Below, piece after piece: positions 8,201-59,839 of a stretch of DNA of 59,839 nucleotides. Within the stretch, counting starts at the first letter, position 1, and every line of letters starts with the position of its first letter. Below the pieces are notes generated by a model. The model was given only the letters and a program-made list of their open reading frames with translations, ran no database searches and was not told the origin of the DNA. The translations under genes and the position numbers were made by a program. The DNA is from Octopus bimaculoides (Eukaryota), in NCBI RefSeq assembly GCF_001194135.2, contig NC_068982.1, positions 120,383,138 through 120,442,976 on the forward strand, given 5' to 3'.

Positions 8201-8502
8201 TGTTTGATTTATTATTTTCAGCATACAGTTTTCATCATCCCACTACTAAGTATGACATCACCTCTTCCTTTCTTAGTCATCTATCACCCCTTTCTTTCTC
8301 ATTCATAAACACAAGCGTATTATTATAGTAGATTATCTCGGTAACCATGGGAGCTATGCAAAAAATACAAAGCCCAGCATCATCACCGGATCATTCTACA
8401 TATCTGTGTAATTTTTCGCACAATTCCACCCAGCCATTTGACCGTGAATCCCAAGACAAGAAAGAATCACCCATGTCAAATTTATATGTATAGATACATA
8501 CA

Positions 8503-9037
8503 TATATCATCATAACCATCGTATAACGTCCGCTTTCCATGCTGGCATGGGTTGGACGGTTTGACTGTGGACTAGTGANNNNNNNNNNTATCATCATAAC
8601 CATCGTATAACGTCCGCTTTCCATGCTGGCATGGGTTGGACGGTTTGACTGTGGACTAGTGAGCCAGATGGCTGCACCAGGCTCCAATCTGATCTGGCAG
8701 AGTTTATACAGCTGGATGCCCTTCCTAATGCTAACCACTCCGAGAGTGTAGTGGGTGCTTTTACGTGCTGCCGGCACGAGGGCCAGTCAGGTGGTACTGG
8801 CAATGGCCACACATATATCATCATCATCATCATCATCATCGTTTAACGTCCGCTTTCCATGCTAGCATGGGTTGGACGATTTGACTGAGGACTGGTGAAA
8901 CCGGATGGCAACACCAGGCTCCAGTCTGATTTGNNNNNNNNNNGGTGTTGCCATCCGGTTTCACCAGTCCTCAGTCAAATCGTCCAACCCATGCTAGCAT
9001 GGAAAGCGGACGTTAAACGATGATGATGATGATGATG
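8503..9037. repeat. Cluster of RTE-3'UTR-family repeats, partly duplicated across two 10-N gaps
   Basis: CATCATCAT-CGTTTAACGTCCGCTTTCCATGCTAGCATGGGTTGG motif at 8510, 8590 and 8820, and inverted at 8945-9037. Further family copies at ~12000-12150(+), 15640-15915(+), 17335-17600(-), 17955-18268(-), 21290-21480(+), 27330-27680(-), 39190-39470(-), 39540-39660(+), 55690-55860(+) and 58330-58500(-). Confidence 0.8.
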
Positions 9038-10182: not shown

Positions 10183-10849
10183 AGCCATCTGGGTATCATT
10201 CTTAATGCAGATACATCATGAAAGGCAAATTATCTACAATATTTGTCTGGGGATAATATCCTGTTTGTACATATTGCATTTAAAAACACAAACTATATCA
10301 GTAACAGATGAGAATTATACAGCAGTGTTGGTGAAAATGCTAGGATGTACATTTCTGTCCATTGGGCTTTGTCAGTAATATACACTCCATAAAATTCAAT
10401 GATTTTTTTGTTCTTGCTTTACATTCATAACTTTATAAAAACATGAAACTTCCTTCCTGGTTGCAATCCACTAGTCTGTCTGTGAATTAATGTGATTCCT
10501 AGATTCTCTGTTGATTGACAAACATGAACAGTCTAAATTCTCACAATTATGTCTTTGTAAATGGAATGTGGCTACATTTCTTGGTTATAATCTCTTAATG
10601 GTTAAATCTACATATGTAGAGTAACAACATTCTTGGTATATATAATTTATTTTTAATAGATTTTTAGCTTTATATCATTGATTTAAACTTAGTTGATTAA
10701 GGTGTGGTCTATTTTTTTTTTTACCATGTTGACCAAGAATGTTTGAATTTCTGTTGATTTAATATAAAAAAGATACCAATTGTAATTGTTTTTATCCTCA
10801 TACTAGTGTTTTTTACTGATTATCTCACTTTCTAATTCTAGTCAACAAA

Positions 10850-16686: not shown

Positions 16687-19523
16687 GTTGGTTTGTTTAC
16701 ATTATATTGTGAGTTTTATCCATTTATCCATGCTTGCATCAATTAAGATGGGTTATATTATAGTCAAGCATTCTCACTAGAACAAACAGATATTCTAAAA
16801 TGGCTGGAAAAATTTGAAGGTTTGCAGTGGTACAATGGTGGGACGTCTGCCGTGTTTACAGATGTGGTTTCGTCTCATGGGCAACCTTCGACTTTTCCCA
16901 TTCAAGGGATTTTTTAATCCAATATTTACATGCTATTATTTATGAGCTCCACGTTAAAAACAATTTACTTCTACTGATCATTTTGAAGTCTCTGAATTGA
17001 ATATACTTTGCTGAAGAGATTTAATAGTATCAAAACATGTTCGTTGCTTTTACCACTTTGTTTTAAAGACAATATCCACTTCTAATTGCATTGTCTTTAT
17101 TTTTCCAAAATTTTGAATTAGCTGCTACTGGAGTTATCTCCCGTGCTTAACTTTATACATACATACACACACACACACACATATATTTATATCTAATATA
17201 GGATAAAATTTTCAAAAAATTTTATCAGTGGCCAGCATATTAAAAATTACTCTTTAAGGTGAAAATTATAAACAACTTATAAATAGAATTGACGATTTAA
17301 AGTCTATTCTCAGCATAGAAATTTTCTTTTCTTTTGCCCTTAACGTCCGTCTTCCACACTGGCATGGGTTGAACAGTTTGCTGGCAAGCTGAAGATTCCA
17401 GTCTGATTGAGCTTGGTTTTTATGGCTTGATGCCCTTCCTAATGCCTACCACTTTAGTGTGTGTTGGGTGCTTTTTAACGTGGCACCAGCACAAAGGCTT
17501 TTATGTGACGCTAGCTTGAGTGTTTTTATATGGCACCAGCCCTTGACTCTAGCAAACCAATCTTCTTCACCAGGGGAAGCAGCCAGCCTTAACACTTCTG
17601 CTGTGGGGAACAGGATAATGACGATGAGCTTCTTTCAGTTTCCATCTATGAAATGCACACTCACTTAAAATACTATTAGTTATTTTTGTGTCCCAACATG
17701 TCCTTTCCAAGCCCCAACAAACAACATATGTATTGCTTTGTGAACAAATTAAATAAAAGAAGAAACATAGAATATTTATTATAGACTAAGGGTCAACATT
17801 AGTATTAGAATTACGGTTGTTACATTAAAAAAAATGAATTAAACAAACTTTCACATCACTTGAAGACTTGTGTAGATGTAAAAATAACCAATATCCTTAC
17901 AGTTCTGAATAGAGAAACTCATTACTTCAGTAGAAACATATTTTATTTAATATATATCATCATCATCATCGTTTAACGTCCGCTTTCCATGCTAGCATGG
18001 GTTGGACGATTTGACTGAGGACTGGTGCAACCGGATGGCTACACCAGGCTCCAATCTAATTTGGCAGAGTTTCTACAGCTGGATGCCCTTCCTAACGCCA
18101 ACCACTCAGAGAGTGTAGTGGGTGCTTTTACATGTCACCCGCACGAAATGGTGTCTTTTATGTGCCACCCGCACAAGAGCCAGTCCAGGGGCACTGGCAA
18201 CGATCTCGCTCGAAAACGCTACAAGACCAGTCAGGCGGTACTGGCAACGGTCACACTCAGGATGGTACANNNNNNNNNNNNNNNNNNNNNNNNNNNNNNN
18301 NNNNNNNNNNNNNNNNNNNNNNNNNNNNNNNNNNNNNNNNNNNNNNNNNNNNNNNNNNNNNNNNNNNNNNNNNNNNNNNNNNNNNNNNNNNNNNNNNNNN
18401 NNNNNNNNNNNNNNNNNNNNNNNNNNNNNNNNNNNNNNNNNNNNNNNNNNNNNNNNNNNNNNNNNNNNNNNNNNNNNNNNNNNNNNNNNNNNNNNNNNNN
18501 NNNNNNNNNNNNNNNNNNNNNNNNNNNNNNNNNNNNNNNNNNNNNNNNNNNNNNNNNNNNNNNNNNNNNNNNNNNNNNNNNNNNNNNNNNNNNNNNNNNN
18601 NNNNNNNNNNNNNNNNNNNNNNNNNNNNNNNNNNNNNNNNNNNNNNNNNNNNNNNNNNNNNNNNNNNNNNNNNNNNNNNNNNNNNNNNNNNNNNNNNNNN
18701 NNNNNNNNNNNNNNNNNNNNNNNNNNNNNNNNNNNNNNNNNNNNNNNNNNNNNNNNNNNNNNNNNNNNNNNNNNNNNNNNNNNNNNNNNNNNNNNNNNNN
18801 NNNNNNNNNNNNNNNNNNNNNNNNNNNNNNNNNNNNNNNNNNNNNNNNNNNNNNNNNNNNNNNNNNNNNNNNNNNNNNNNNNNNNNNNNNNNNNNNNNNN
18901 NNNNNNNNNNNNNNNNNNNNNNNNNNNNNNNNNNNNNNNNNNNNNNNNNNNNNNNNNNNNNNNNNNNNNNNNNNNNNNNNNNNNNNNNNNNNNNNNNNNN
19001 NNNNNNNNNNNNNNNNNNNNNNNNNNNNNNNNNNNNNNNNNNNNNNNNNNNNNNNNNNNNNNNNNNNNNNNNNNNNNNNNNNNNNNNTTATATATATATT
19101 AAACCTATTGTTTGAAAAACAATTTTATATTAATAAAATTATATTTGATAACTACTTATACTAATTTCTCCTAAAAACTGAAAACTTTTGTTTTATACAC
19201 CACAAAAATATACACTACAATTTGCATACATATATATATATATATGTAAAAAATTACTCTTTTACTTATATATATATTAAACCTATTGTTTGAAAAACAA
19301 TTTTATATTAATAAAATTATATTTGATAACTACTTATACTAATTTCTCCTAAAAACTGAAAACTTTTGTTTTATACACCACAAAAATATACACTACAATT
19401 TGCATACATATATATATATATATGCTTATGGAAGGAGGATGTTGTTGATGATACTTGACTGAAACTTTTAAATTCATCATTGGTTCTATTTCTAATTCCT
19501 TTACTTTTTCTTCTTTCTTGCAG

Positions 19524-22616: not shown

Positions 22617-24034
22617 CTAGAAAATGAGAAATTAATCTTATTTTACTGAAGTCACAAAAATGGTTACATCACAATAACATAGCAACGTATTGCGCAGCAT
22701 TTCACCTTGACCAGATGACATCACATCCATCTTATGGTATTCCCCTTTATCATGACAATACACTAATAGATGAGTTTACAATCATTTCTACCAATCCTTA
22801 GCCCTCAAATGTCCTCACCAAATCAGTAGAATAATCATTTTCTCTTGGCCTCCTGAATATATGCAGACATTTTAAGTTTGTCCATGTTCCTGACAAGCAG
22901 CACTTTGGATAAATGTCTTCTATCACAGCCTTGGATTGACCAAAGCTTTCTTAGTGAAATTTGACAGACAGAAACTGTGTAAATCTGTTAAAGGGACAGT
23001 TTCATTTCTCCATGGTAGATATAATATGTCAACCAGTATTACACCACAGACTGGCCCTTGGTTGCATTTAACAGAGTCCACTCTTTGCAAGCAATCAAGC
23101 TTCCTAGAAACCCTGAATAAAATCATGGGTGAAACCCTCTCTCCTAGGTACATAGACAGAATGCCGAATGCACTTTTGCCAAGAGACACACTGCTGAATG
23201 GACATAAAGTCAAAAATATATACGAAAATTAAAATATTTGATATAATTGCCAAATTGGTGAATTGGTCATTAAGCTATGTAGGTAGGAATGTTTTTTAAT
23301 TTTCTTTTTTGTGTCTGTTCGGTTTCTTGTCTTTCGGTAAAAGTGCATTCGGCATCTTGCCTGCACATGCTCTCCTATGTCTGAAGCCATTAAAAGCAAG
23401 TTGTATAGAAACAACAGCTACAAACATGTTACATAACAATTATTGCATAGCAAAGATATTTACACAAGTTAGACCACCATAGCAACAACAATAAATATAT
23501 GATTACAAAAGTCCCATAGCAAAAACAAAGATATCCAAGAAAGTCAATAAGTCTGTGATTTTTTAGTATTGGAAGAAAACAGTCAGATATTATAAGAGGA
23601 AGATTCAGAACTGTCATGAGAAGTAAACTCAAACATTCAGCACAAATTCCTTGTTTAAAGGGTCTTGTCCAAATATATAGTCTGCCCTTCTAACAGCACA
23701 TTGATATACCCAACATAGGAGTTTCTACTTTATCACAAGGCCTACTGGAAATAGCAGCCTATTATTCCTCAAATCACATCCTACCATCTTGAAATAAAGG
23801 CTCTTCAATGTAACCCTAGATATTAAATAACTGAAAAAATGATTGGATGGTCACAGCTGGAATGTCTTTGGTCATACAACTACTTGATTGGGGTTAAAGA
23901 GCAACAACATACCCATCTCTTGTTAAATCAGCAGACCAAATAAACTCTTCTTGTAAGAGAGAAAAGTAGATGTAAAATTAATACATAGCCACATTATTAG
24001 TGTGATGATGTATTAAAAATCAGAATTTGCTTAC

Positions 24035-39135: not shown

Positions 39136-40263
39136 ATGCACCTTTGTTTTGACATGAAGTAAAGAGTGCAAATAAGCATCACCAGAATCATCATCATCAT
39201 GATCATCCTTTAACGTCCGTTTTCCATGCTGGCATGGGTTGAACAGTTTGACCAAAGCTGGCAAGCAGGAAAGCTGCACCAAGTTCCGAGCTGATTTGGC
39301 TTGGTTTCAACAGCTGGATGCCCTTCCTGATGCCAACCACTTTACAATGGGTGCTGGGTGCTTTTAACGTGGCACTGGCACAGGACTCTTGCAGATCAAT
39401 CCTTTTCTTCAGTGAGAACAGCATTAACGCTTCTGCTGTGGAGGACAGGTCTCCATGAGTACAGCTAAGCGCCATCATATAAGTGATGTTGTTCATTTCC
39501 AGCCTTCCATGAAAAATGTGTGCGGCCATGTTGAAATGTTGCCTTGCTTGGAAACAAGTGAGGGTTGGCAGCTGGAAAGGCATCCAGTTGTGGAAAACCT
39601 ACCTCAACAAATTCCATCTGATCAATGGAAGCATGAAAAAATTAACATTAAACAATGATGTTCCAGCATCTGAAAAATATATCTAAAAGCATCAAAGGGA
39701 AAATTTCAGCCAATATTTACTAAGTGTTCAGTATGTAATCATCTGTACTAACAAGTGATCATCTGACAAAGATCTAAAAAAAACACTAGAAAAGAAATTA
39801 CACTGATTGTAAAGTTAAGGTACTCTGCTCCAAGTCAATGTAACCAAAAGTTCAGATCTTGCAACAGTCATTATGTGGTATCTTAATAAGGTACCTAATA
39901 GTATTTATTCTAGTTTTCCTAACTGAACATAAAGAAACAAGTTCCAGTGTTACTTCATTGTTAAGTGTTTAGAATTAAGGAAAGCAACCAGCAGTAAAAA
40001 CAAGTGTTATATACAAAAAAGAAAAGAAAATGAATAAAAAACTCTTCATTCATGCAAAAATGAGAAAAATGGAGAAAAGTTTAAAAAGGAAAAAGTGAGG
40101 GTTATTTTAGCAATATATGTATCAGGGTACAATATACAACTGCTTCTGAAAATATACAGTAGTCAACAATGAGAAGAAGGGGGCCAAGGGAATTTTCCTA
40201 GGTAGAATCTAAGTATTTTAACTAGTATTTAGTAGAGGAAATTATTGACAATAAAGGATTTAC

Positions 40264-40585: not shown

Positions 40586-41408
40586 CAAGGTTTGATCAAT
40601 AAATATCCAGACTGTTGCGATAGTAATGAAGCTAAAGCATGCAGAATGAAGCCACTTGGCAGAGATTGACCTTGAACTCTGTGCATACACACTAAGTCTT
40701 AATGTTCTAGCTCACTTCCGCTGTTTACATCAGTGCTTGGAAGGAAGGCGTGTAGTGTGTAATTGTCACATTGACCATGACAGAGAGGCCTATGCAAAGT
40801 TGCAGAAAGTGTATGGAGAGGAGTGTATGAGCTGCACACAAGTGTATAAGTGGTTCAGATGTTTCCAAGATGGCCAAAATAATATCAATATTGATGAACG
40901 TTCTGGGAGACCTGCAACCAGCAGAAGTAAGAAAACCATCACAGATGTGTGAGCAGCCGTGAGGGGAAATCATCAAATCACCAGCCATGACTTATCAGAG
41001 GATGTGCAGATTAGTTATGGTTCAGTTCAGTCCATTATCAATGAAGATTTAGGTATGAGACACGTGTCTGCCAAGTTTGTTCCAAATCAAGATCTCCTTG
41101 ATTGTGTCTAGAACAATGATAACCTGTTGAAAACTTTGCATAGGCCTCTGAGCAGGTATTGCCAAGCTTTTGGCAAAATTTGATGCAGATGCTCTGCTCA
41201 ACTTTCACTGTCATGATCAATGCAATGATCATGCATTATATATCTTCTTTCCAAGCACTGCTATAAACAGCAGAAGTGAGCTAGAATGTTAAAACTTAGT
41301 GTGCATGCACAGCAGAACTCAAGGTAAATCTATGCCAAGTGGCATTACTCTGTATGCTTTAGCTTCATTAGTATGGCAACAGTCCGGATACTTATTGATC
41401 AGACTATG
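40586..41408. mobile_element. Mariner-derived element with two opposed 5' ends (long inverted arms), TA flanked
   Basis: TA|CAAGGTTTGATCAATAAATATCCAGACTG...CAGTCCGGATACTTATTGATCAGACTATG|TA. The + strand has EAYAKLQKVYGEECMSCTQVYKWFRCFQDG...DERSGRP and LGMRHVSAKFVP; the - strand has EQSICIKFCQKLGNTCSEAYAK. Confidence 0.85.
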
Positions 41409-41778: not shown

Positions 41779-42570
41779 ATTTGTATGTATGTGTGTGCAT
41801 GCGTGTGTGCATGTGTGTGTTTACGTATGTATACATGTATGTATATGTATATGCGTATCTGTTTATTTTATTAGTTAATATGTGTAGCTATGTGTATGTG
41901 TATGAGTCTATTTCTATTTATACATGTGTATATATAAATGGATACATATGTGTATATGGGGACATGCACACATATGTGTATATTTGTATATGCATGGGTA
42001 CGTATGTGCATATGTATAAATGTGGACGTATGAGTGTATATATATGTGTGTGTGTATATGTGTGTATGTACAAGTACACATATATATGTATATGTATATA
42101 TATATGTGTGTGTGTATCAATATGCATGTATGTGTGTGTTTGTGTATATGTATTTATGTATGNNNNNNNNNNNNNNNNNNNNNNNNNNNNNNNNNNNNNN
42201 NNNNNNNNNNNNNNNNNNNNNNNNNNNNNNNNNNNNNNNNNNNNNNNNNNNNNNNNNNNNNNNNNNNNNNNNNNNNNNNNNNNNNNNNNNNNNNNNNNNN
42301 NNNNNNNNNNNNNNNNNNNNNNNNNNNNNNNNNNNNNNNNNNNNNNNNNNNNNNNNNNNNNNNNNNNNNNNNNNNNNNNNNNNNNNNNNNNNNNNNNNNN
42401 NNNNNNNNNNNNNNNNNNNNNNNNNNNNNNNNNNNNNNNNNNNNNNNNNNNNNNNNNNNNNNNNNNNNNNNNNNNNNNNNNNNNNNNNNNNNNNNNNNNN
42501 NNNNNNNNNNNNNNNNNNNNNNNNNNNNNNNNNNNNNNNNNNNNNNNNNNNNNNNNNNNNNNNNNNNNNN

Positions 42571-44259: not shown

Positions 44260-45362
44260 AATTTTATCTTACTGATGTGGTGGACAGTTTTTCAAAATAG
44301 CCTGAAGTGCATAAGTGTAAAAAGCGAACATCTGAAGTTACATTAAGTTTTTTACATGAATTGTTTGCCAGATATGGTATTACTGATACCATTGTATCTG
44401 ATAATGGAACTCAATTTACTTCAGACAAGTTCAAATAATTTTGTAAAATGTTCATTATTAAACATGTGACCACTCTGCTGTCTCATCCGAGGTAAAATGG
44501 ACAAGCAGACTATTTTGTTGATACTTTTAAGAGAGTCTTAAAAAAGGTGAACAATGAAGTAATGGACAACCTTGCACTTCAACAATTTCTAAGAGTGTAC
44601 CGAATAACACCTAATCTGAATACGCTGCCTGGAATGTCACCTGCAGAATTGATGTTTGCTAGAAAGATCAGATTCATCTTTGATAAGCTGATACTGAGTG
44701 AAAATAGAAAAAAAGCAAACAACAACTATACTTCAAAATTCTTCCAGTTAGGTGACAAAGCTGTTTTTAAAACCTATAGATGTGGTAAAGAAAGCTGGTA
44801 GGACAGTAATTATTAAACAGATTGGAAGAATGTTATTCCTGGTAAAAGGAAAAAATGTTGAACATAAAAGACATATAAACCAACTTAAAAAAAGATTCAC
44901 AGAAGAAACAGTCATGAGAGATGAAATTCCCATGGAAGTATTGTATGACACATTTGAGGTGCCAACACCCAAACAAATTGAAACTACATGTTCAAGCACC
45001 AAAGAAAGAAGAATGGAAACACTGGAATTAAGCCCTAAGTGTAAGAGATATTAAAACTCTAAATGGAATTTAATTCCCCAAAAGGGAAGAAGTTGTGGGA
45101 GGCTAACTCTCAAAAGGGGAGATGTTGTGGCAGGATTCCTACCAACCCCATGTGACTAAAAGTGAACTGACACATTTCAATAATATAAAGAATTGTTGAG
45201 TTGACAGGAGCAATTGATTAGGAGCAACTGATTGTGAACAGTTAAGAGAGTGTTGAGCCTCATGTAACAGTGATTGTAGTGCATCATGTGAATACTTTCT
45301 TTCTCCCCACTTTGTTAAATTATTTATCCAACACCACAATATGGAACTTACTAATGTCAACA
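44260..45362 (+). mobile_element. Ty3/Gypsy 3' fragment: decayed integrase, PPT and 240-bp LTR (45123-45362)
   Basis: ELFARYGITDTIVSDNGTQFTSDKFK*F and QQFLRVYRITPN...SPAELMFARKIR; purine tract AAAAGGGGAGA directly before TGTTG...CAACA. Confidence 0.8.
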
Positions 45363-45698: not shown

Positions 45699-46293
45699 CT
45701 ACAATGACAGAGATAGCAGAAAAAGAAATAGCAGAAAAACTTGATGACAAAATCATGTTAAAAGGTGAAATCAAAGAAATAGAGAAACTTGTAGGGTTCA
45801 CTGAGTGTAACAACATATTAGTTTTTGTTGTTTCAAATAAACCTTGTCTGAGCAAACCTATAATCGAAAGCATTCTAGTTACAGCCATCCTAATTTTTCA
45901 GTAGTATCTACAACTACGTAATCTAATGTGTTTTTCAGTGCTTATGACAAAGGGGTGATATATGAAGGAAAGTCTGCAGTAACTTTGAGTAAGCTAAGTA
46001 ACCACCAAGAAGAACCTTTTTGAAAATAGAAGTGTTATCATATATAAAAGAACTATTATTTTTCTACACTTCTCTGTTAGTTGTGTTATTGTTGTTGTTA
46101 TCATTGTTTCGACTCAGGTCAACGCTGATCAAAAGGACCAATAACATGTATCTAGTATTCTATTATCTGATGAGCTTTTTCTTTTTTTTAAGACAGGAAG
46201 ATGTGATTTGAGGGAGATTTGGCTACTATTTCTAACAAGTCGATTGACCATATAGGGCAGAGTATAATAGCAAGAGTGAAAATGCAGGTTTAA

Positions 46294-46513
46294 CCTTTTA
46301 GCATTAAAACCAGCCGTATCTGGCCAAAGTATTCTGCCTGTTTTACATTCAAAATGTTCATAGCCAGCCTCTCTAATCTACTCTACAATATCATACTAAA
46401 AATAAACAATCACATCATCAGAATCTCAAAGCCACAAGATAATGCATGATTATTTCAAAACAATGTGAATAAATAAGCATCAAATTTGACAGAGTAATCT
46501 GAATGCTAAAGGG
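46294..46513. mobile_element. piggyBac-like MITE, 220 bp, TTAA target duplication
   Basis: TTAA|CCTTTTAGCATT...AATGCTAAAGGG|TTAA. Confidence 0.75.
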
Positions 46514-49500
46514 TTAAGAAGGTCCTTTAATGAGGCCAAGGACATGACAACTTCCCTAGTGTTAGTGCTATGTAAAGTGGTTGATGTTAGAAAGGACGGC
46601 CAGTCAAAGAATTAGAAACCATGCCAAAATAGAAGATACAAATGAAACATGGTCCACCAACTAATGTTCCTCCTAAACTGTGTGCTTGAGCATGCACACA
46701 TGTTTTACAACTAGCACACAAGGTTTTCAAAATAAATAAGTCTTTTTTTGTCTCTTTGAAACAATTAATCATATTTTATTTTTTATCTTTTACTTGTTTC
46801 ACTCATTAGACCGCAGCCATGCTGGAGTACCACCTGGTACTCATTCTATCGATTTACTTTGTCAAATCACTAAGTTATAGGGATGTAAACACACCAGCAC
46901 CAGTTGTCAAGCAGTGGTGGGGGACAAACAGATACACACACACACACACACACAGTTCAAATATACAGAAAACAAAAGGTGAAGACAGGTGTAGGAACAA
47001 CAAGCAGGTGTATTAGTTTAATGCTCAGGAAAAATGGAAAAGTTTTTACATTTCGAGCCTATGCTCTTCAACAGACAGGATTAAGAGGAAAAAAAGGAGA
47101 GAGAGTGAAAAACATGGAGAGAGAGAAAAAAAATGTGGTGGGATTAACAGTTCAACATATATACAAATATAGGACTGGCTTCTTTCAGATTCCATCTATC
47201 AAATCCACTCACAAGGTAGGAGACACTTGCCCAAGGTGTCACACAATGGCACTGAACCCCAGACCATGTAGTTGGGAAGCAAGCTTCATACCACACAGCC
47301 ACGCCTTCTAAACAGAAATTGAATGAAACTGACAATCTATCCAACTCATGCCACATTGAAAAATGGACATAAAATAACAATGAAGACGATAAGAAGCTTT
47401 GAGGAGATTCATCTGTACTAGGTACTTCAATTTTACAAAATTACAGTTATGTAATTTGTATTAAATTATTATTGGGATGTAGAAAAACTTTCCTGTTTGT
47501 GAAGGGATTCCCCACTCCCAGTTTTCATACCCCTTCATCATCTAAACCATTGCAATTCTTTTGTATATTCAGCTATAGTCAAAGAATATCTTATTGTGAA
47601 TAAAATAGTAATTTTTCAGACTATTAATCTCATCTTTCTAGATGAAAATCACCATCATCATTATTTAAGGTCCACATTTCCATGTTTGCATGAATCACAT
47701 AGAATTTGTTCTTTCATCTTCACTATGTTTCAACTGGTTTGATTTCAAGTCTTCATCAGGTTATGTAGATAGCATCAGACTGGATTCAAACTAGAACCAT
47801 TTATTTGTAAACTAATTCTCTTATCTAGTAAACAGTTGACACACAAATTCTTTTATAGACGCATATGGTTAATAATCCAAAAACAATAATCTTATTAACC
47901 CTTTGGACTTGCCAACTCAAAGTTCTAGAAGCAATGATTTTTTTACTATGTCCTGCCAGTCTAGATTCCATTCTGCCACGTTTCTGATCACTGTTGTTAT
48001 TTACATGCACACCTGGTAGAAGGTTCACGGTTCAAAGGATTAAGAACAACTTAGACATTTAGCTAGTTTATTATGGAGATAACAAAATTCATTGAACTGT
48101 TAAAATTCTTCTTTTAGATTATAAAATACAATAAAAATTTGGAAAGCTTTTGAGAAATACTTACAATAACTATGTAAAATGTGAGAAGATAATTCTTATT
48201 AATTTAACAAATGTTTTTTTCTCACTAAGTCACAGATAGTAGAAGCAACAGAGTTAACCTTTAAGCTAAAGTGTCAACAGTTCGTATCTAATCCCCAGTA
48301 TTGTCCCAAGAATGTCTTTAAACAATCACATGCTCTACTAGAAATAGTAGCCAAGTTTTCGTCAAACAACACAAAATTTCTCTTAAAAAGACAGGGTGGT
48401 CATATATGAAATACATTCTGTCATAGATCTGCTGAATTGGAGTTAACATGGGACTAAACAATAACAGCTCATTAATACAACTCATTAACTCAATCTGACT
48501 AGCTCACCATTGTAAGCAGCTGCAGTAACATACAACCTATTTCTAATAATAGCTGAAGGCCACAAACTTTACAGGAAAGATATAGTCAATTAAATTGCAA
48601 CTAGTACTTAATTAGCACAAAGATACAAGGTAGATTTAACTAAGGCAGTATTCAAGCAATACTTCTTTATAATTACAATTAAACCTTGGGAGAGGCATTA
48701 TGCCAGTAATAAACACATGCACTGGTTCAGTCCTTTATTAATTTATAAACAGTATATAGTTTTTTGTTAAATAATTTCATTGCACTCTTGCAATCTCTTC
48801 AGTAACTTGTCTCTCCACTTCCATTTATTTTGAATGTATGATTTGGCATTGTTTTGAATTTATAATTAATTTACAATTAATTTACAAGTGTCTCATTAGC
48901 TTTCAGTTCTGAGTTCAAGTCCTTCAAGAAATGGAGAAAGATAGGCTCCACTAAGCTGACTTGGCTTCTGAATATTACATGAAGAAAAACATTTTTAAAT
49001 GCAAATAGATTATCAGATATACAGCAACAACTACTTTAATACATAATGAAACAAGTGCCAATACACTGAATGTGGAAAGCAATAAAACTTCAGTTAGTGA
49101 CGGCTATATCTGTAGTGAGGAAAAGCAAACATTGTCGAACAGGGAACTCCTTCAATCCTGGCGGATCATAGGTTTCTACAGCTGGAAAGTTCTCCTCTAA
49201 GATGCAGACCTGGGAAAGGTTTTCCCAGTGTTAACACAGCTTGGCACCGGTGCCATCAAAAGCATTACCATCAGAATACAAAGAACCAGAAAAGATACTG
49301 TAGGACAATTTATCTAAAATTTTAACAATTCTTGCCAATCGATGCCTCTGCCTCCTTGAACAGACAAAAAACAAAACTGACCTAAGTTGAATTCGAACTC
49401 AGTGTACTGAGTCGGAACAAATACAGCAAAACATTTTATCCTAAACTCTAATGACCCAGCTATTTCACTGCTTACGATCATAGTTCAAATACCGCCAAGA

Positions 49501-50209
49501 TTAGCTTTACTTTTCATCTTTCATGGATCAGTAAAATAAAATACCTAGTTGAGTGCTGAGGTCAATGTGACTGCCTATACCTCCCTAAACTTTTGAGGCC
49601 TTGCACCTCTTATAAAAATCAATATTTATTGTAATTCCTCTGTTGGCAATTGCAAATAGTGGAGATAACACTGATTATGTAGAGCCTAATCTATATTTTG
49701 TTTTTCATCTCTTAAAAGAACTAAAAAAAAGAGAACCAATAAATTGTTGCCATGAACCAATCTTAACCACTTCGGCGTCTCTTTGAGTTCATACGTCCCA
49801 CAGGATATTTTGTTTACACACACAAAAACAATATTGTTTGTTATATTTTTTAATTGAGTAACATAAGTCCACCTAACCCTGAGTAAAGCTGTCCTAAAAA
49901 TAGTTATATTGGTAGTGATAAACAACAAAGAGGATAAAGTTCTTTGGATAATAAACTGATATGACACTAATGCTTCTATACAAAAATACTAACTTCAAAT
50001 ATGAACATCTACAAACACACGCACATAGATAAATGTATACAAACGTACATACAAANNNNNNNNNNTATATATATATGTATGTATATATATATATAATTAT
50101 GTGCGTGAGTTGTCTAAGAGATCATAAGTCAGGGAAAAAGATGCACTCATATATCTGTCAGTAGAGTGGGTATATTGTCAGAATTTTATAGTATTAAATA
50201 TCCATCATG

Positions 50210-50299
50210 GCTGATCTTACCAATTGGTTTCGCGTAAAGAATACAATGGAGTGTTAAGTAACAATCTGATTATATAACTTTATGCTCATCAGAGATAGC
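50210..50299 (-). ncRNA. Type I hammerhead ribozyme (Penelope-associated minimal type, palindromic helix III)
   Basis: Minus strand reads gctatct-CTGATGA-gcataaag-[38 nt]-ctttacgc-GAAA-ccaattgg-TA-agatcagc. All core nucleotides are present, with helix II 7/8 bp, helix III A-U/C-G/C-G plus an AAUU loop, a GUA triplet and helix I of 4+3 bp with one bulge. Confidence 0.75.
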
Positions 50300-50629
50300 T
50301 TATAAGGAAGGGAATATGGAGACTGCTCTCTATTATCGGAGATGGATAAGCTGCTGCAGAAACGGTAGTGGAACAAAAATGGGCTAGGGGATTAGGTTAG
50401 GAGTTATGTCCTTGGTTGGGTATGCTGTGAAGCCGGCAAGAGTTATCCTGAATGTGGGTATTATTAATGTGGTGCTCCTGTAGGGATGGGGTGTGTGATA
50501 TGAGTAGTATTGTCATATGTGTAATTTTTTCCAGGAGTGAAGGTATATATAGCTGTGTTCGTTGGTCTGTTTTCTTTCTGTAAAGGATAAAGTCCGGGGA
50601 GGGGGGTATGTTAGCGTGTAGTATATAAT

Positions 50630-51125
50630 GTGTGTGTAAGGGGTCTGTGTATATTAGTTACATGCCAGACCCTAGCCCCCACCAAGAGAAAGCACCATTG
50701 GAAAGTACTGTGGTTCACACTGCCATTCTCTTTAAACGTTAAGACCGGAGTAGGTAAGATATTCCTTAGTTTAGTTGATAGGCACTTCCCCATATCAACA
50801 GATTCAACAAAATATTTAATAGACATACTCTGAGATTATCCTTTAGCTGTGCACCTACTATAAAAAAGATTTTAGTAGATAGGCCCAACTTGTCCACTGA
50901 ATGGCCACTGCAATATGGAGAGTTGTTTATGAGGCAGAACTAACAACAACAGGACCCATTGGACAATGGGTGTGGAAGTATGTGGGGGGCAACAGAAGGC
51001 CTCTTCAGAATTCACTTTAATAACCACTAGTCTTCCTTCAACATCCCAGAGAGGCAAGCATGTTTGGGCTTTGAAAGAAAGCGCCACAGAGTACAGTTTG
51101 GAGTGGAAGATCCTATAAAAATGCA
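50630..51125 (+). mobile_element. Penelope-like retroelement remnant (RT-linker plus GIY-YIG endonuclease), frameshifted
   Basis: Across frameshifts it reads [30 protein letters not shown] / [20 protein letters not shown] / CPLNGHC / VVYEAE...KYVG / ATEGLFRIHFNNH*SSF / HVWALKE..EYSLEWKIL, matching my recollection of PLE linker and GIY-YIG motifs. Confidence 0.8.
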
Positions 51126-51254
51126 AACTGTATTTCAATAGAAGCAGGAAGTGCCGCTGAATGACTAAAATGAGGATATTGAAGTAAAACTAAATTAACC
51201 AATTTCTAAATAACTTCTGCATTAATAACGACTTACCATGCTTTGAAAAATATC

Positions 51255-51303
<49 letters not shown>

Positions 51304-52179
51304 GGCGCGTATGTGTGTTACTAATAAAAGTAACAAAGTCTTCTAAACAGAGTGAAATATTACAAAATTCTGAGCATTTACAGCACAACATTTACATATT
51401 GTTATTATATCTATTTCTTTTTTTTTTTTTTTTTTGCAGATTCGGAATTTCCGCAGTCGAAAAAGTAGGTTTCTGAAGGAGAGAAAAAAAGTGGGGGGCG
51501 GTCGTCCATGTCCTTTACCTCCGCCGAAAGTTCTTCGGTAATTTTCTTTCATGTAAATAAATGTTTATGTTGATTTTAAAATCTGACAACGAAATCTTAT
51601 AAAATGACAATGCTCTAAAAGATGTACATTACATATTCATATGTTAAATATGAAAATAAAAAATCTTTATTAGCACTACATTATCTACTGTGTCTTGTCT
51701 TAGGGGAAAACAATAAAAAACATTTTTTTCAAAAGAAACAGGTGTTATTTGGGAGGAGATTTGACTCCGTTTTCTAGCAGGTCGAGCTTGAGGGTCCCGC
51801 CTTGTCGCCTTAGGTATGTCATGAGGATGGGAGGAGAGTGAAAGGAGAAAGCAACTTTATACTTCTAGAGACTGTTACAGTCTTTAAAGTTCGCAGTTTG
51901 AAAGTAAAATACGTCAAAAAACGAGAGTCAGCAATTCAGTAGCAAGATGTTTCCAATAAGACCTGAAAGGGTGAATAAACGGGGAGAGGGCTCTACAGCC
52001 AGTGAAAACTGTTGCTGCAATGCGGGAATATAATTCGTCAATATACCAATGTCTGAAAAGTGTTAGTAAATAAACAAATATTACTACCTAAAACCTTGTA
52101 TTATGATACAAGGAAGTAAATAGTCGTACTAGCTGTATTTTACGATATACATGAGCAATATATGTATATTTTTTTATTG

Positions 52180-52340
52180 TTTAGCTCCAGAACTGCCCAG
52201 AGGGAGCAAACCTATGTTCATCACGTCTTTTTAAGGATATCTAGAATTATATTACCCAATGTGCCTTTGTAAGATAGGACATGGTAAAATTCGCTGCTAT
52301 TTCTAGCAGGTCGTATTACCACGTAAAGGTCCTTTGTTTA
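52180..52340. repeat. Dispersed repeat family E (GGGAGATTTGGCTGCTATTTCTAGCAGGTCGA motif), unclassified and SINE-like
   Basis: The motif recurs at ~13480-13520, 23740-23790 (inverted), 25280-25310, 26140-26180, 37080-37130 (inverted), 46205-46250, 48330-48370 (inverted), 51745-51790 and here, often next to a TTGTTGTT-TAGC-CCAG end. Confidence 0.6.
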
Positions 52341-52635
52341 TATATTGATATGTGAAACAAGGTTTTAGAGCAAAATAAAATGTGCCCTTGGAATGGTCTG
52401 TATGGATAACTAGATTAATTTAATGAGGTCCTCGTAGTTTAAAGGTCAAATATCACCGAGATCAACTATCTTTTTCGATGGCGATAAATTACCAGTACGG
52501 CGCTAATAGCGAGAGAACAGATAAAACCCCTCTTACCAAACTTGTGGAAATGTTCCTATATTAAGAATGAAAGACGACGAAAACAAAATAAAAAAGAATG
52601 CAGATGCAGGAAAATATTAGATTAATGACACTTAC

Positions 52636-52964
52636 TTAAAAGCTGCGGACAGTCCAATAGCTTGAGGAAAAGAAGTAGCTGGCCCTGCGTCAGCATCACC
52701 ACGGAGACATTCTGTGTCCCATTGATATGGTTTTATTCCTAGTCTGGGAATGGCAGGAGCGGGATACACAGATCCACCCCGTGAAAGCTGTAAAATAGTT
52801 TCATTTATAGTTAAGCGACTAACTAAATCGTTCACTCGGGCAGAAAAACTCAAGGATGTGTTTTGGAATGGATATATTCCATAATGTTCCGCCAGCACAG
52901 GATATTTTCCACTGTGAGCTGACAGAAGTAGGAATACAGAAATTATAACACTTGCTGTGTGCAT
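52636..52964 (-). CDS. GH3 beta-xylosidase/alpha-arabinofuranosidase-like glycosidase, coding exon 1 of 12
   Basis: ATG at 52964; MHTASVIISVFLLLSAH (signal-peptide-like)...YPFQNTSLSFSARVNDLVSRLTINETILQL...AIPRLGIKPYQWDTECLRG...ATSFPQAIGLSAAF-AA|gtaagt; 329 nt, phase 2. Confidence 0.93.
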
Positions 52965-55900
52965 CGTTGACGCTTTCACTGTTGTGCTACATTATTTTCG
53001 ACCAAATAGAGTTATCTACCCATGTTTTGAAATTGCATACGGGAAAAAGACGTCTTTAGCATTAACAGTTTCAGTTTCAAAATTCCTTCATCCTTCTTCT
53101 TGACTCGGTTTCCGCATGACTTTTTGAGGGTTATATATTTTTTTTATGAAATAATGCAAGAGATACGTTTTCGAGTGTAGATTACGAATATGTTAGTTTT
53201 TTTCTTCTTCTTTTTGAGGAGGTTTAGATTATTCTCCCGACCTTGTTTCCTCGTTACATTCTCTAAAATTCGTATTTTAAACGACATTTTGCAGAAACCT
53301 GTTTTCCAAAATGTCGATTACATAATGTTGATGTTACAAACATAAATCGGAAAATAAGAAAAACGTGGTTAGAAGCTTGCTTCCTAACCTCATGGTTCCG
53401 GGTTCAGTCTCACTGCGTAGCCTTGAACAACACGAGCTGACCAAAGCTTTCAGGGTAGATTTGGCTGTTGGAAACTGAAAGAAGTCCGTCGTATGGGTAT
53501 GTGTGTGTGTGTTTGATTACCACCACTTGACCTCAGGTGCTAGTGTGTTTACATTCTTGTAACCTGGCGGTCCAGCAAAAGTACCAGGTTTAAAGAATCA
53601 GGCTGATTCATTTAACTAGAAATTCTTTAAGGCGGTGCTCCATCATGGCCGTAGTCTAATGACTGAAAATAGTTAAAGAAAATGCAAGATTTACTGAAAT
53701 TAGTGTTAGCAATGTTCTTGGTGGTGTGAAGAATTATCTGAAACCCCTCTCTCGACCCATGAAAGGTAACAGGTAAAGTTGACCGCATAATGCACAGAGT
53801 GCAAATAAATAGTAAAATGAATTTTGTTGATTACTAATGATTCTGCTTTTTTTTTACCATGCACACATGCATGCACACACACAGATATACTTCTATGTGT
53901 ATTGTGTAATTGATGCATTTAACATAATATGAATGAAAGACTCAAATACAGTTCATAGAATTGAAATAATATTTAATGTTAATTCTCAAAATAAGATGGC
54001 AAGTTGGCAGAATTGTTAACATGACAAACAAAATGCTTAACGGCATTTCATTTGTCTTTGTATTCTGAGTTCAACCTTGGCCGAGGCCAACTTGGCCTTT
54101 CATCCTTTTGGCAGGGTCAATAAAATAAGTACCAGTCAAGTACTGGTGTCAGTGTAATCAACTTATCCTCTCCCCCAAAATTGCTGGCCTTGTGCCAAAA
54201 TTTGAAACCAATACTAAATAGCATATTGTTAATGTGCCTGACTAAAAAGGGTAAGCAGCATTTCTCACAGTTTAACGTTCTGAGTTCAAATACTGTCAAT
54301 AAGATAAGTACTAATTGACCACTGGGGTTGATGTCATTGATTTACACCCTCCCCCACCCCGAAACTGCTGGCCTCGTGCCAAAATTTGAAACTAATATTG
54401 AATAGCACAGGAATGTGGCTGTATGAGTGTGCATATACACATATGTATGTATGTATGTATGTAAGCATGTATGAATGTATAAATATCCAGCCAACCATAG
54501 CAGTCACCTGCAAGTGAATGTAACTTAGTAGCATGTATCATGCTTTGGTCAATTGTTATAGGTGCCCATGAAATCATGAGCAGGCATAGACCCCCACCCA
54601 CTTTAGCATGACATACATTTAAACATTAATGTTCTCTCCCAGCATGATGTAATTATAAACATTAAGGTTCATCATAAACATAATAAAATTATTTGCCAAA
54701 GTTAGAGACACTAAGATGGCAGTGAATTAGACAATTTGCTCTGTTACCTGAATAACACTGATGAGCAAACATTTTGGACCACATCCAGAGTAGGGCTCAT
54801 TCTACTGATTAGCATTCAGTTTCAATTATTAAGACACACTCCAGCAGCTCCTGGCCCACAGGCTTGCTGTCTTTTTTCAGTTTCTTTTATAATGCCAGCC
54901 AATACTTTGGAGCTGGCTCCATTACTCAGGCACCACATGTCTCACCACCTCTCCTCATTTTGTTACATCTAACCCCACTCTGGCCCTACACTAACCACTA
55001 TGCCAAGTCCTTCCTTCCAAGAACATTGGTCCTCAGGAATCTCTTCCATTCTCACATCTTGTGTTGTTGTGCAACAGTTTAAATGTAACATTAACATCAA
55101 GCTCACCAGTCTTAGAGGGCTTGCAAAAATCATTGACACTGCCCCTCCTCCAAACTCAGCAAGTTTAAAAAATGAATTTCAACCATATATTTCAAGTATC
55201 AATGTATGTAGAACAACTAACACAGGAGGTGGCTCAGTCTAAATTAATACAAGGGTACCACTTTCTATTTTAAGCTTCATTTTCATATGTTACCTGGCAT
55301 GTTTAAGGCAAATTAGAAGACTAAATCTGGGAGATTATATCTAAACATTACTTTCCTCAGTATGGATATGACCTTTAAGAAACCCAAGTAAAGCTTCCAC
55401 TCCACAAAGATTAAGAAATAAATGAGGTTGGAATAACCTTTATCACTGACCACCTAGTAACCACCAACACTCCTGATATACCAGAAACCTGCCAATCACT
55501 TAAAGTGGATGAAGTTGTGGAAGAGGGAGACCCAGGAAGATATGGGGCAAAGTACTGAAGGTTGATCCCAAAGGGAGATGACAGAGGACTGAGATATGTG
55601 ATTCATTGCAGTACTCAAGAAAATGCACCCACCACAACAAAATTGATATCCTAAAACAAGTGTGCCATGTAAAAAGCAGCTAGCACATCTTTGTTAAATG
55701 TTTGGCATTAGGAAGGGCATTCAGCTATAGAAACCAAGCCAAAATAGACTATGGAACCTGGTGCAGCCCTTGGCCTGACCAGTTCCTGTCAAGCCATCCA
55801 ACCCATGCCAGCATAGAAAATGGACTGTATACGTTGATGTTGATGATGATGATGATGAGGCTAACATTTACATCAGTGCTTTCAGCTAAACTCTACTCTT

Positions 55901-56270
55901 CATTGAATTTGAATAGTTTAGACATGTTTTTCACAGATCTGGATCTCATTCTAAACCCGTGGGCAATTATAGAGTGAATTTTAGGGCTTATAAATCTAAT
56001 ATTCTCTTATCCTTCCTTAATACTGGTTTCTATATGCTATTCATATCTGCACACGGTCTGCTTAAGAAGTTGTTGTGTCCTAGCATGTATTGCTTCTTTT
56101 ATTTTTTATATTTTCCAGTGGTGTTCTCTATTATTTTAACTTCATCCCACAGGTGGAGGTGGTCTCCATTTTTCCATACATGATCAGCTACCACTTAACA
56201 ACTAGTGTTGATTTGTTTATGTCCCTGTAACTTAGCAGTTCAGCAAAAAACACAGATAGAAGAATTATCA

Positions 56271-57290: not shown

Positions 57291-59839
57291 TAGGTAACAG
57301 AAGCTATTAACTACTTCTCATAGATTTGAAATCCAATATTAAGTCTGTGAGAGACTAATATCTTTAAAACCATATATATACATAATTTCTTGGCTATTCC
57401 AAACTGCAATATGACTTGCAATAGTTGATAAGAAAAGAAAGGTTCATCGCTGTTGTATTTTTCTATGGACAAACAAACTGCTGTTGTAGCCATTTTAGTA
57501 TTCTTTTATCTTTTTTTGTCTGTTTCAATCATTGAACTGCTCTACCTTCAAGGATTTAGTCACTACCTTCAAGTCAAATTTTAGCATAAGGCCAGCAATT
57601 TCAGGAGAGGGAGTAAGCCGATTACATTGACTCCAGTATCAACTGGTACTTATTTTATCAACCTTGAAAGGATGAAAGATGAGGTCAACCTCAGGGGAAT
57701 TTGAACTCAGAATCTGCAATCCTGATTAAAAACAATCAACAATGTAACAAATAAACTTGACCATAACAGCAACAAATAAAAAAGAAAGTATGCTACTCAA
57801 CAACCCCCATCCAAATATGGATGTTGTTATAACCTAGAAAAAGGTAAAAAAAAGATATATGAGAATTCCCACCTACCTGCAGAATTCTAACATTGCCAGA
57901 ATGAGGTGGACCATAAAAGCAAACATAGAATCGGCATTTCAACCATTTCTACAAAATCTGAAGTAAAAGACATTTAAGACTCATGCTCTGCTTTCACAAA
58001 TCCACTGTGCTATCAAACCTTATAGTTAATGTCCATGACATTTATGCGATCATTCAGTTAATGAAAAAATTAGCAAAATCCCCCCTCAATTAAACCCAAC
58101 CCTCTTTAAAAAAGGAAGCATCTATATACAAAGATATACAAAAAAAAAAAATGGAAATTTTGAAGTTGGAACACTTGATCATAAGTCAGTTCAATCAGAA
58201 CTAACCTTGAGTTAAATAACAACAACCATGACAATGGCATACTGCTCAATGAGAGATCCTTGGATTTTGCCAACTAGTTGAAAAATAGCAGCAGAAAATG
58301 GAGATTTTTAACTGATCAATCATTTAAATTCTGGCTTCCATGCTAGTATGGGTTGGATGGTTTGACAGGGTCTGATGAGTTGAAGGATTGCATCGTTCAC
58401 TAATTGCCCCTTCAGCACGGTTTCTATCACTGGATCCCCTTTCTAATGCCAACCACTTTACAGGATGTACCGGGTGCTTTTTTTGTAGCACCATTACTGG
58501 TGATTATTACCTCAAAGACTAAGGCCCTAAAGTGGCCCCTTAAACTGAGGGGAACTGAAGAGAGAGTGAGCAATGATCCTAGGAGAGAAACAAGAATGGC
58601 AAGGAATAGGGAGAAATAAGGGATTAATGGTAGGTTGAGAAAAAGAGAGGGATAGTGTTGAAAAGGTGATGAGGAAGATTGTGTAAAGAGGGAATCTAGA
58701 GCTATCCAGCATTTTAAAGGGTGAGTATGGACAGGTGTGAGAGAATGGGGACAGGAAAGGGTCAAGAGGAATCTTAAATCATTGAAAGAGAGATGTAAGA
58801 AGGGTCAGAGAGGGGAAAAATGAGGAGTGGGTTGGGACATTGCAGAGACAGAGAAGCTGTAGAGAACTGTGTGACAAAAAGAGGCAGAGGGAGTATGACA
58901 AGTAGATACTGAAGAGTGCTCCAGAGGTAGGAAGAAGAGAAAGAGGTGAGAGAAACAGTGGGTGGGTACAACAAGGGAAAGAAATGCTAGAGAGCATCCT
59001 AGATGTAAGAGAGGGATACTGAGATAAAGGTAAGAGATGTTGCTGGGTGGCAATAGAGGTAACTCAGGAGAATGTACTGTGAGTGATGAAGAGATGAGAT
59101 TCTTGAAGGATATGGTGACAGGCAGTAAGATGGTGTTGGAGGAGAATAGTATACAAGTATATAGATGCACACCCATACATGTGTTATGGATTCTTAATCA
59201 CTACCCTTTCCATAGGTAGATATGTCTTATGTAGCACCACCTATCACCAGTCAGTATGATTCTTTATCATCTCCTCTGTGAAATGTATCTTCAGGTCAGC
59301 CTTTACTACTTTGTCCTAAGTCTTCCTTAGTTTCACCTGTCCACAGGTTCCACTATCTTGGAGAGAGTAGAACTTATGGAAGAGAGATACCAAAGAATTT
59401 TGAAAAAGATACTTTGAACTGCTCAGAAAATACCAATCAACAAATATCAAGGTTACAAGGTTTTAATTACAAGATTCTAATTTACATATAAATATATTTT
59501 GGCAATTATTTTACATGAATGTCTCAGTTATTTGTTTTTTTTATGTCTATTCGTTGAGAATATTTTTCAGTAAGTCATCTCGGTAATATTTTTCTCTGGT
59601 ACAGATTTCTTTGTTTACCATGTCTTTTGTATGAGAATGAATTTCAGAAATTTCACAAGTGTAAAACTTTACTCCATTGTTTTGCTCATCACAATGAAAC
59701 GTTCTTTCTTAGATGCTTTAATGACAAAAGTGAATTAATTTATCAACTATAAGTTTATAATTCACAAAGATTTTTTTTTCTTAATTTTAATGGAAGGCCA
59801 TCTCACAAATACGAACACACATACAGATATACATACATA

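Follow-up and report, generated by a model that had tools for sequence, protein, structure and literature searches.

Intron 1 of the GH3 (beta-xylosidase-like) gene in the window, the whole 59,839-nucleotide stretch of Octopus bimaculoides DNA analysed here (60 kb in what follows), carries a type I hammerhead ribozyme motif on its minus strand, and the combined evidence supports a genuine hammerhead of the kind found in Penelope-like elements (PLEs), lying in sense orientation to the host gene. The motif is very probably a fossil: a solo copy left by a Hydra-clade PLE, which would cut the pre-mRNA rarely or never and would serve no host function. The call is settled by the anatomy of the flanking transposon, not by curated covariance models, and a true retroelement ribozyme is here recognizable by eye though unflagged by Rfam.

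Read directly, the minus strand from 50299 to 50210 runs GCUAUCU / CUGAUGA / GCAUAAAG-(38 nt)-CUUUACGC / GAA / ACCAAUUGGU / A / AGAUCAGC (Table 1). This reading yields the full core and the three helices that the original prediction had described. The invariant positions are complete (C3-A9, G12-A14, A15.1-U16.1 and, as the non-G residue H17, an A), and the G10.1-C11.1 pair is present (A9-G...C-G12); an unpaired nucleotide between A9 and 10.1 cannot be placed without breaking that pair. Helix I, in which the open ends lie (hence type I), consists of 4 contiguous bp, a bulged C and then 3 bp, and helix II of 7 pairs with one A.C mismatch. The 10-mer of helix III had been called self-complementary and is indeed a perfect 10-nt palindrome, which in its monomer form gives 3 bp closed by an AAUU loop. 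On rereading, the GUA triplet predicts cleavage at the same site as before, between 50218 and 50217. The earlier interpretation of helix II fared less well. Its A.C mismatch had been attributed to decay of a CpG, but the A at 10.3 may be ancestral, because the independent copy on contig L002 also reads CUGAUGAGCAU. The supposed 38-nt loop is the distal part of a structured hairpin: taken by itself, the 54-nt arm forms a single hairpin, long and imperfect (-9.4 kcal/mol, z = -3.49), an energy matched by 1 of 200 shuffles. The suggestion that a long loop may supply tertiary contacts for monomer activity is not supported, the arm being a self-contained hairpin extension.

Table 1. Features of the window and hammerheads of related elements (window coordinates, unless a locus is named)
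Feature	Position	Strand	Basis or remark
Type I hammerhead ribozyme motif	50210..50299	-	direct reading, descriptor, shuffles, custom model R3
Hammerhead, helix I 5' strand (GCUAUCU)	50299-50293	-	
Hammerhead, core CUGAUGA	50292-50286	-	
Hammerhead, helix II arm (54 nt, AU-rich imperfect hairpin)	50285-50232	-	distal part is the '38-nt loop' of the original prediction
Hammerhead, GAA	50231-50229	-	
Hammerhead, palindromic helix III ACCAAUUGGU	50228-50219	-	
Hammerhead, A17	50218	-	predicted cut between 50218 and 50217
Hammerhead, helix I 3' strand (AGAUCAGC)	50217-50210	-	
PLE copy with severe 5' truncation: 3'UTR / pseudo-LTR tail, no coding part	50111..50650	-	L002/L003 homology
Linker and C-terminal GIY-YIG endonuclease relic of a Hydra-clade PLE, decayed, frameshifted	50660..51195	+	three-frame reading, homologues, tblastn
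(TA)n-rich microsatellite adjoining the minus-strand PLE tail at its 3' end	50066..50110	.	sequence
10-N assembly gap after the (TA)n microsatellite	50056-50065		ribozyme strand, ~150 nt downstream
(GT)n/(CA)n microsatellite immediately following the plus-strand endonuclease relic	51256..51319	.	
GH3 (beta-xylosidase-like) coding exon 1, with signal peptide	52979-52638	-	ORF, homologues, tblastn
GH3 coding exon 2	45700-45539	-	tblastn, five mollusc/metagenome GH3 fragments
GH3 coding exon 3	40437-40324	-	tblastn
Relative hammerhead	L005 243-285	sense	
Relative hammerhead, UTR	L007 2672-2720	sense	
Relative hammerheads, both pLTRs	L008 15-58 and 2711-2754	sense	2696 nt apart
Relative hammerhead, UTR	L009 99-142	sense	
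Relative hammerhead, UTR	L011 2477-2517	sense	
Relative hammerhead, UTR	L012 471-510	sense	
Relative hammerhead, UTR	L013 220-264	sense	
Relative hammerhead, UTR	L014 2461-2504	sense	

A motif-descriptor search had been proposed as a check, and a structural descriptor built for this analysis matches the site 50299..50210(-) and no other on either strand of the 60-kb window. An equally good motif appeared in 3 of 2000 dinucleotide-preserving shuffles, that is, about 0.0015 times per 60-kb window; given this per-window rate, the chance that a random hammerhead-like motif would fall sense inside a 540-nt PLE tail is about 7e-6. The hammerhead did not arise by chance. For the 90-mer, RNAfold returns the hammerhead fold as centroid, with a weak overall z-score (-1.24); the minimum free energy structure is a different fold, equal in energy, that pairs CUGAU of the core with AUCAG of helix I.

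All three GH3 coding exons lie on the minus strand, hence the sense orientation of the hammerhead. The exons, delimited by ORFs and tblastn, bear out the earlier placement in a first intron of about 7 kb: intron 1, bounded by coding exons 1 and 2, extends over 52637..45701 (6.9 kb). Exon 1 has 473 homologues, the nearest named ones from gastropods and bivalves and the closest 55-71% identical, and a downstream GH3 exon matches Pfam Glyco_hydro_3 (E = 6.7e-14). Intron 2 contains a mariner-type transposon fragment, directly upstream of coding exon 3 on the gene strand, in the form of an ORF (40656-40952, plus strand) with a Mos1/mariner HTH_48 domain (Pfam E = 7.4e-07).

Around the hammerhead, two PLE fragments, a tail copy on the minus strand and an endonuclease relic on the plus strand, are joined head-to-head near 50650. 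The tail was recognized through L002 and L003, two 1-kb Logan contigs (public read assembly) carrying the protein P0122. The 3'UTR of L002 (874-968), downstream of the endonuclease ORF, matches the window minus strand at 50647-50541 (71%, including an 18-nt identical block), and L003 does likewise. The first 128 nt of both contigs match window plus strand 50282-50398, inverted relative to their own ORF. Both begin with the reverse complement of GCUAACUCUGAUGAGCAU, which covers the helix I 5' strand, the core and the first helix II bases and agrees with the 5' half of the window ribozyme at 17 of 18 positions, up to the contig end. The minus strand therefore has, in this order, the 3'UTR block (50647-50541), a pre-ribozyme block (50398-50300), the hammerhead (50299-50210), a tail of about 100 nt, the (TA)n-rich microsatellite (50110-50066) and the 10-N gap. 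Because this order is colinear with L002, the segment from about 50650 to 50111 is identified as the 3'UTR / pseudo-LTR tail of a 5'-truncated PLE copy, about 540 nt long, with the hammerhead some 100 nt from its 3' end. L002 has the same inverted layout with a different junction. It represents, with L003, the only further copy of the subfamily within reach of the searches, and this copy ends after the 5' half of the ribozyme. The homology of the tail to the L002/L003 3'UTR, together with the adjacent endonuclease relic, agrees with the origin in a PLE terminal repeat that had been claimed for the hammerhead. The (TA)n tract at 50066-50110 is the likely insertion target of the tail copy; such tracts are the target of Hydra-clade PLEs, and adjacent copies that are truncated and inverted and end in a microsatellite belong to the described anatomy of PLE insertions (Craig et al., 2021, PMC8557442).

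The plus strand between 50560 and 51200, read in three frames, contains a broken ORF made up of pieces of 27 and 20 residues followed by CPLNGHC / VVYEAEL..KYVGG / FRIHFNNH / KHVWALKE / KCR. Pfam gave no matches for these pieces among the local ORFs. Stitched together with X at the frame breaks, the relic matches P0121 (an Octopus vulgaris hypothetical protein, 43% identity), P0122 (the Logan read assembly protein, 49% identity) and P0123; the stitched query, and likewise its alignment with P0121/P0122, returned only 3 to 4 proteins. In a tblastn of 13 full-length relatives against the window, only residues ~465-675 matched, at 50660-51154 (+), which places the truncation at about residue 465-480 of a ~700-726-aa ORF. 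Since nothing upstream is matched, this copy too is 5'-truncated. It has no 3'UTR or hammerhead of its own, and neither the descriptor nor R3 found a hammerhead downstream of the relic on the plus strand. In nucleotides the relic is 67-81% identical to L001, a truncated copy from Octopus vulgaris in which no hammerhead was found. Judged from the frameshift-filled relic and from a tail only 70-80% identical to its nearest copy, the element in GH3 intron 1 is old.

Several further candidates around these copies were discarded. An RT-coding relic lying antisense under the ribozyme was rejected, as tblastn with the 13 full-length proteins matched nothing upstream of 50660. The inverted repeat 50170-50195 / 51356-51381 was considered as the tail of the plus-strand copy; its extended alignment is only about 2 sd above shuffles, and a retained tail is therefore not claimed. 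Self-BLAST of the region gave only microsatellite matches and no second copy. A metagenome scan with a ribozyme-specific pattern found nothing, and the one metagenome contig obtained in a scan with the conserved 3'UTR block has nothing beyond the 24-mer in common with it and matches by chance.

The family of the relic was explored with P0123, for which an exhaustive HMMER search returned 5084 clusters; full-length members have about 700-726 aa and weak RVT_1 and GIY-YIG Pfam matches. Among the 13 full-length relatives, the motif Y[RK]DD occurs in all 13, CxxC..E in 12, DKT in 10 and the CxCX5C linker in 6 (in P0122 it reads CPCRGNTTC), while CCHH occurs in none. The diagnostics of the Hydra clade are a C-terminal GIY-YIG domain without CCHH, the CxCX5C linker and DKT, not DKG; its elements are short (under 3 kb), insert into (TA)n and always come with hammerheads (Craig et al., 2021, PMC8557442). 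The flanking relic belongs to the Hydra clade of C-terminal-endonuclease PLEs. Together with its relatives it shares with the clade DKT, the CxCX5C linker, GIY-YIG without CCHH and CxxC near the conserved E, as well as ORFs of ~700 aa, units under 3 kb, the presence of hammerheads, (TA)n insertion, 5' truncation and an inverted adjacent copy. The window differs from the published elements in holding just two dead fragments, in a mollusc host, for which the nearest TE relative also points to a cephalopod and where few families have been reported (PMC8557442).

Twelve contigs with full-length family ORFs (L004-L015) were fetched, and 8 of these 12 loci have sense-strand type I hammerheads in their UTRs (Table 1). 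Helix III in these relatives is 8-10 nt long and near-palindromic: L005 has GAAACCGUGGUA and L013 ACUGAUUAGU, a 10-nt palindrome, compared with GAAACCAAUUGGUA in the window. The L005 hammerhead (GAAACC..GGUA) is very similar to that of the window in helix III and flanks. Helix II plus loop takes up 10-20 nt in the relatives, against the 54-nt arm in the window, and among the relatives only L014 has an unpaired nucleotide between A9 and 10.1. One of the loci, L008, is a metagenome contig with a complete PLE unit, a hammerhead in both pseudo-LTRs and an intact 723-aa ORF, and has the appearance of a Hydra-clade PLE that was active recently. The G10.1-C11.1 pair is nearly universal in hammerheads. 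In the hammerheads of L007, L008 (both), L009 and L012, a U stands opposite a U at 10.1/11.1 (A9-U[stem]U-G12), and this U/U is kept across four different Hydra-type PLEs.

Rfam searches, which had been proposed as a test, gave no match in the whole window for clan CL00010 at the gathering threshold and no hammerhead match on a 321-nt slice even at E<=10. Rfam also overlooks the majority of hammerheads in the relatives: it reports only L005 (HH9 at 20.8 bits, below gathering) and L011 (Hammerhead_1 at 28.2 bits against a gathering score of 34), while those of L008, L013 and L014 are missed entirely. The negative result for the window is uninformative for this reason. Custom covariance models were built from the family itself. 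MAFFT misaligned the relatives' cores, and the alignment was instead bootstrapped through Infernal, from the single-sequence model R1 through R2 to R3, which comprises the nine relatives' hammerheads and excludes the window sequence. R1 did not detect the site 50299..50210(-) and R2 gave it only 10.4 bits; with R3, 50297-50213(-) is the top match in the 60-kb window, at 17.5 bits (E~0.013, E-values being rough). A dubious second R3 site at 2596-2627 scores 17.3 bits (E~0.015), and the match to the ribozyme is best regarded as supportive but marginal. In the nine-sequence alignment of the relatives, which was fitted to the model, pairing reaches 93.7% and compensatory changes are found at 9 of 13 pairs, with none of 500 shuffles as good.

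The motif resembles the minimal hammerheads of PLEs in being type I, in lying in a PLE terminal repeat / UTR sense to the element, in the G10.1-C11.1 pair, in a helix II stem of 7-8 bp and a contiguous helix I of 4 bp, and in a palindromic helix III that implies dimer action; most genomic copies of these ribozymes are likewise solo motifs in truncated elements (PMC4209133). It differs in having no unpaired nucleotide at the usual place between A9 and 10.1 and in the extension of helix II to a 54-nt hairpin. Strict PLE minimal hammerheads also have no helix III hairpin, whereas the 10-nt palindrome of the window can form one of 3 bp (PMC4209133). Long spacers have already been noted in PLE hammerheads, because the core halves of 'HHR_half_core' in the 3'UTRs of Naiad PLEs are 35-50 nt apart (PMC8557442), a separation comparable to the 54 nt seen here. 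In contrast to those cases, three helices and a full core can be drawn in the window and the spacer is a well-formed hairpin; moreover, the window element is of Hydra and not of Naiad type. The amniote hammerheads HH9 and HH10 in RECK, CTCL and DTNB (De la Pena & Garcia-Robles, 2010, cited via PMC6155905) are also type I, sense and intronic, and are thought to descend from retroelement ribozymes. They are ultraconserved across species, have loop-loop tertiary contacts and match Rfam, unlike the window hammerhead, which has no Rfam match and sits in an obviously decayed transposon. The metazoan non-LTR retrozymes (Cervera and de la Pena, 2020, PMC7229834) share with it type I topology, a short palindromic helix III and a relation to PLE pLTRs, but they are tandem repeats of 170-400 nt, while the window has a single copy attached to a PLE 3'UTR. 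The window hammerhead is thus one more solo copy among the thousands that PLEs have left in invertebrate genomes, and a member of an ordinary, known class. Only the long helix II hairpin and the sense intronic position are unusual, and they would matter only if cleavage were demonstrated.

The history that best accounts for these features would begin with a Hydra-clade PLE bearing a type I hammerhead in its 3'UTR / pseudo-LTR, sense to the RT-endonuclease ORF. Following the mechanism proposed in the literature, the short palindromic helix III would let two copies, on tandem pLTR transcripts, pair as an active dimer that processes the element RNA. Two 5'-truncated copies would then have inserted head-to-head at a (TA)n tract in GH3 intron 1, the minus-strand copy retaining just its ~540-nt tail with the ribozyme and the plus-strand copy the linker and GIY-YIG endonuclease part, now ridden with frameshifts. 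By the accident of this orientation, the ribozyme would be transcribed within the GH3 pre-mRNA. Because the copy stands alone, with no partner over at least 60 kb, its helix III hairpin is marginal and another fold competes, cleavage would be very rare or absent.

The folding models are consistent with this outcome. The helix III hairpin is predicted at -0.9 kcal/mol, against -13 kcal/mol when two copies pair through the palindrome, and the hammerhead-competent fold makes up 19% of the 90-mer ensemble, a share that falls to 0.4% once 100-nt flanks are included on each side. Many metazoan type I motifs have a helix III of 1-2 bp, weaker than the 3 bp plus tetraloop present here, and some monomer activity from such a helix is possible, as is low-level cleavage by the window hammerhead. 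Neither the descriptor nor R3 found, on the plus or the minus strand of the window, a second hammerhead with which the palindromic helix III could pair. Single PLE minimal hammerheads showed no detectable cleavage in vitro, and dimers had low activity (Cervera and de la Pena, 2014, PMC4209133). The suggestion that a dimer requirement keeps the ribozyme nearly silent agrees with both the folding models and these assays. As helix III is of the dimer type and without a partner in the window, cleavage of the host pre-mRNA is probably negligible, and the hammerhead is probably a fossil from the RNA processing of a PLE and nearly silent within the GH3 pre-mRNA. The intact core is no evidence of selection, because with ~15% divergence in each lineage a core of ~13 nt would survive by chance in about 10% of decayed copies.

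Against this fossil reading, the ribozyme might be active and possibly domesticated, with the helix II arm or host factors letting a single copy cut the GH3 pre-mRNA within intron 1 and so adjust the mRNA output, a role suggested for the conserved amniote intronic hammerheads. This appears decidedly unlikely. Although the core is fully intact despite a divergence of about 25-30% between the element and its nearest known copy, cores survive by chance in the proportion just given and intact ones are preferentially noticed. The sense orientation within the intron, the significantly structured helix II arm (z = -3.49) and a helix III with 3 bp would suit an active ribozyme, and sense intronic hammerheads conserved in RECK, CTCL and DTNB offer a precedent (PMC6155905). 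However, the palindromic helix III has no partner in the window, the competent fold has a low predicted occupancy in context, PLE minimal hammerheads are inactive as monomers in vitro (PMC4209133), and the flanking element is a dead, frameshifted relic. The hammerheads of Xenopus retrozymes are moreover depleted from introns (bioRxiv 10.64898/2026.07.22.740005), which suggests selection against active intronic copies. The more specific proposal that the helix II extension enables monomeric co-transcriptional cleavage, and that the relic was co-opted to limit GH3 mRNA output, is extremely improbable; were it true, the GH3 ribozyme would be an invertebrate counterpart of the amniote intronic hammerheads.

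A partner in vivo would be at hand if the motif were one unit of a tandem array that is retrozyme-like, non-autonomous and descended from the PLE tail, the other units having collapsed into an assembly gap; small linear or circular RNAs could then be released. The 10-N gap on the ribozyme strand, ~150 nt downstream at 50056-50065, could hide such a tandem partner. Animal retrozymes have been proposed to derive from PLE pLTRs, and tandem or inverted PLE structures are known to break short-read assemblies (PMC8557442). Yet the tail reaches (TA)n, the expected insertion target, before the gap, and the window holds no second ribozyme, no repeat of 50111-50650 and no tandem signature, so that an array is very unlikely. 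Next to no credence is given to the idea that CUGAUGA, GAAA and complementary stretches simply came together in AT-rich intron DNA. The missing Rfam match, the 90-mer z-score of only -1.24 and a marginal R3 E-value equalled by a dubious second site would all be expected of a chance assembly, and a rate of 0.0015 per 60 kb amounts to tens of chance motifs in a genome of a few gigabases. These motifs would not, however, be expected sense inside a 540-nt PLE tail (~7e-6), with the 5' half of the ribozyme and its upstream flank conserved in the independent copy L002, nor with very similar helix III and flanks in relatives of the same element (L005, GAAACC..GGUA; L013, the 10-nt palindrome).

Other sites in the window show traces of hammerhead-like sequence. 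A long inverted repeat at 2500-2660 has arms on opposite strands, about 25 nt apart, each reading UUGAUGA-CUGCC-AUGA-GGCAG-GAAA-GUAUACU-A; the arms are hammerhead-like, with U instead of C3 and no helix I, and the right arm is the R3 match at 17.3 bits (E~0.015). Two readings of this repeat are possible: two PLE hammerheads, placed head-to-head and since decayed, or a foldback element with a fortuitous likeness to such a pair. At 10242-10308 (+), UUUGU-CUGGGGA-(35 nt)-CAAACUAUAUCAGU-A-ACAGA has helices I and III like those of an L008-type PLE hammerhead (UUCGU...GAAACUGUCAGUAACGAA), with a mutated core and a long helix II spacer (R2, 11.9 bits, E~0.8), and may be another decayed relic. A third site, UAUGU-CUGAAGccA-(18)-GAAACA-(13)-UGU-U-ACAUA at 23376-23435 (+), gives a weak R3 match (11.4 bits); its core is interrupted by a 2-nt insertion, and it is either a decayed hammerhead or due to chance.

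The window contains ten N runs totalling 2402 N (2849-3825, 18270-19087, 42163-42570 and seven shorter ones) and abounds in (TA)n, (CA)n and (TATG)n microsatellites, an indication that the assembly is a short-read draft, with gaps, of a mollusc genome rich in repeats. The 100-aa ORF at 44752-45054 (+) (..VEHKRHINQLKKR..), for which Pfam gave no match, resembles the C-terminal part of LTR-retrotransposon integrases. Four further ORFs, at 8391-8777 (-), 39203-39583 (-), 58427-58765 (-) and 55702-55977 (+), share VVGIRKGIQL... and a second string of 19 letters; all four belong to a single interspersed repeat, which may be a SINE and is scattered in copies through the window.
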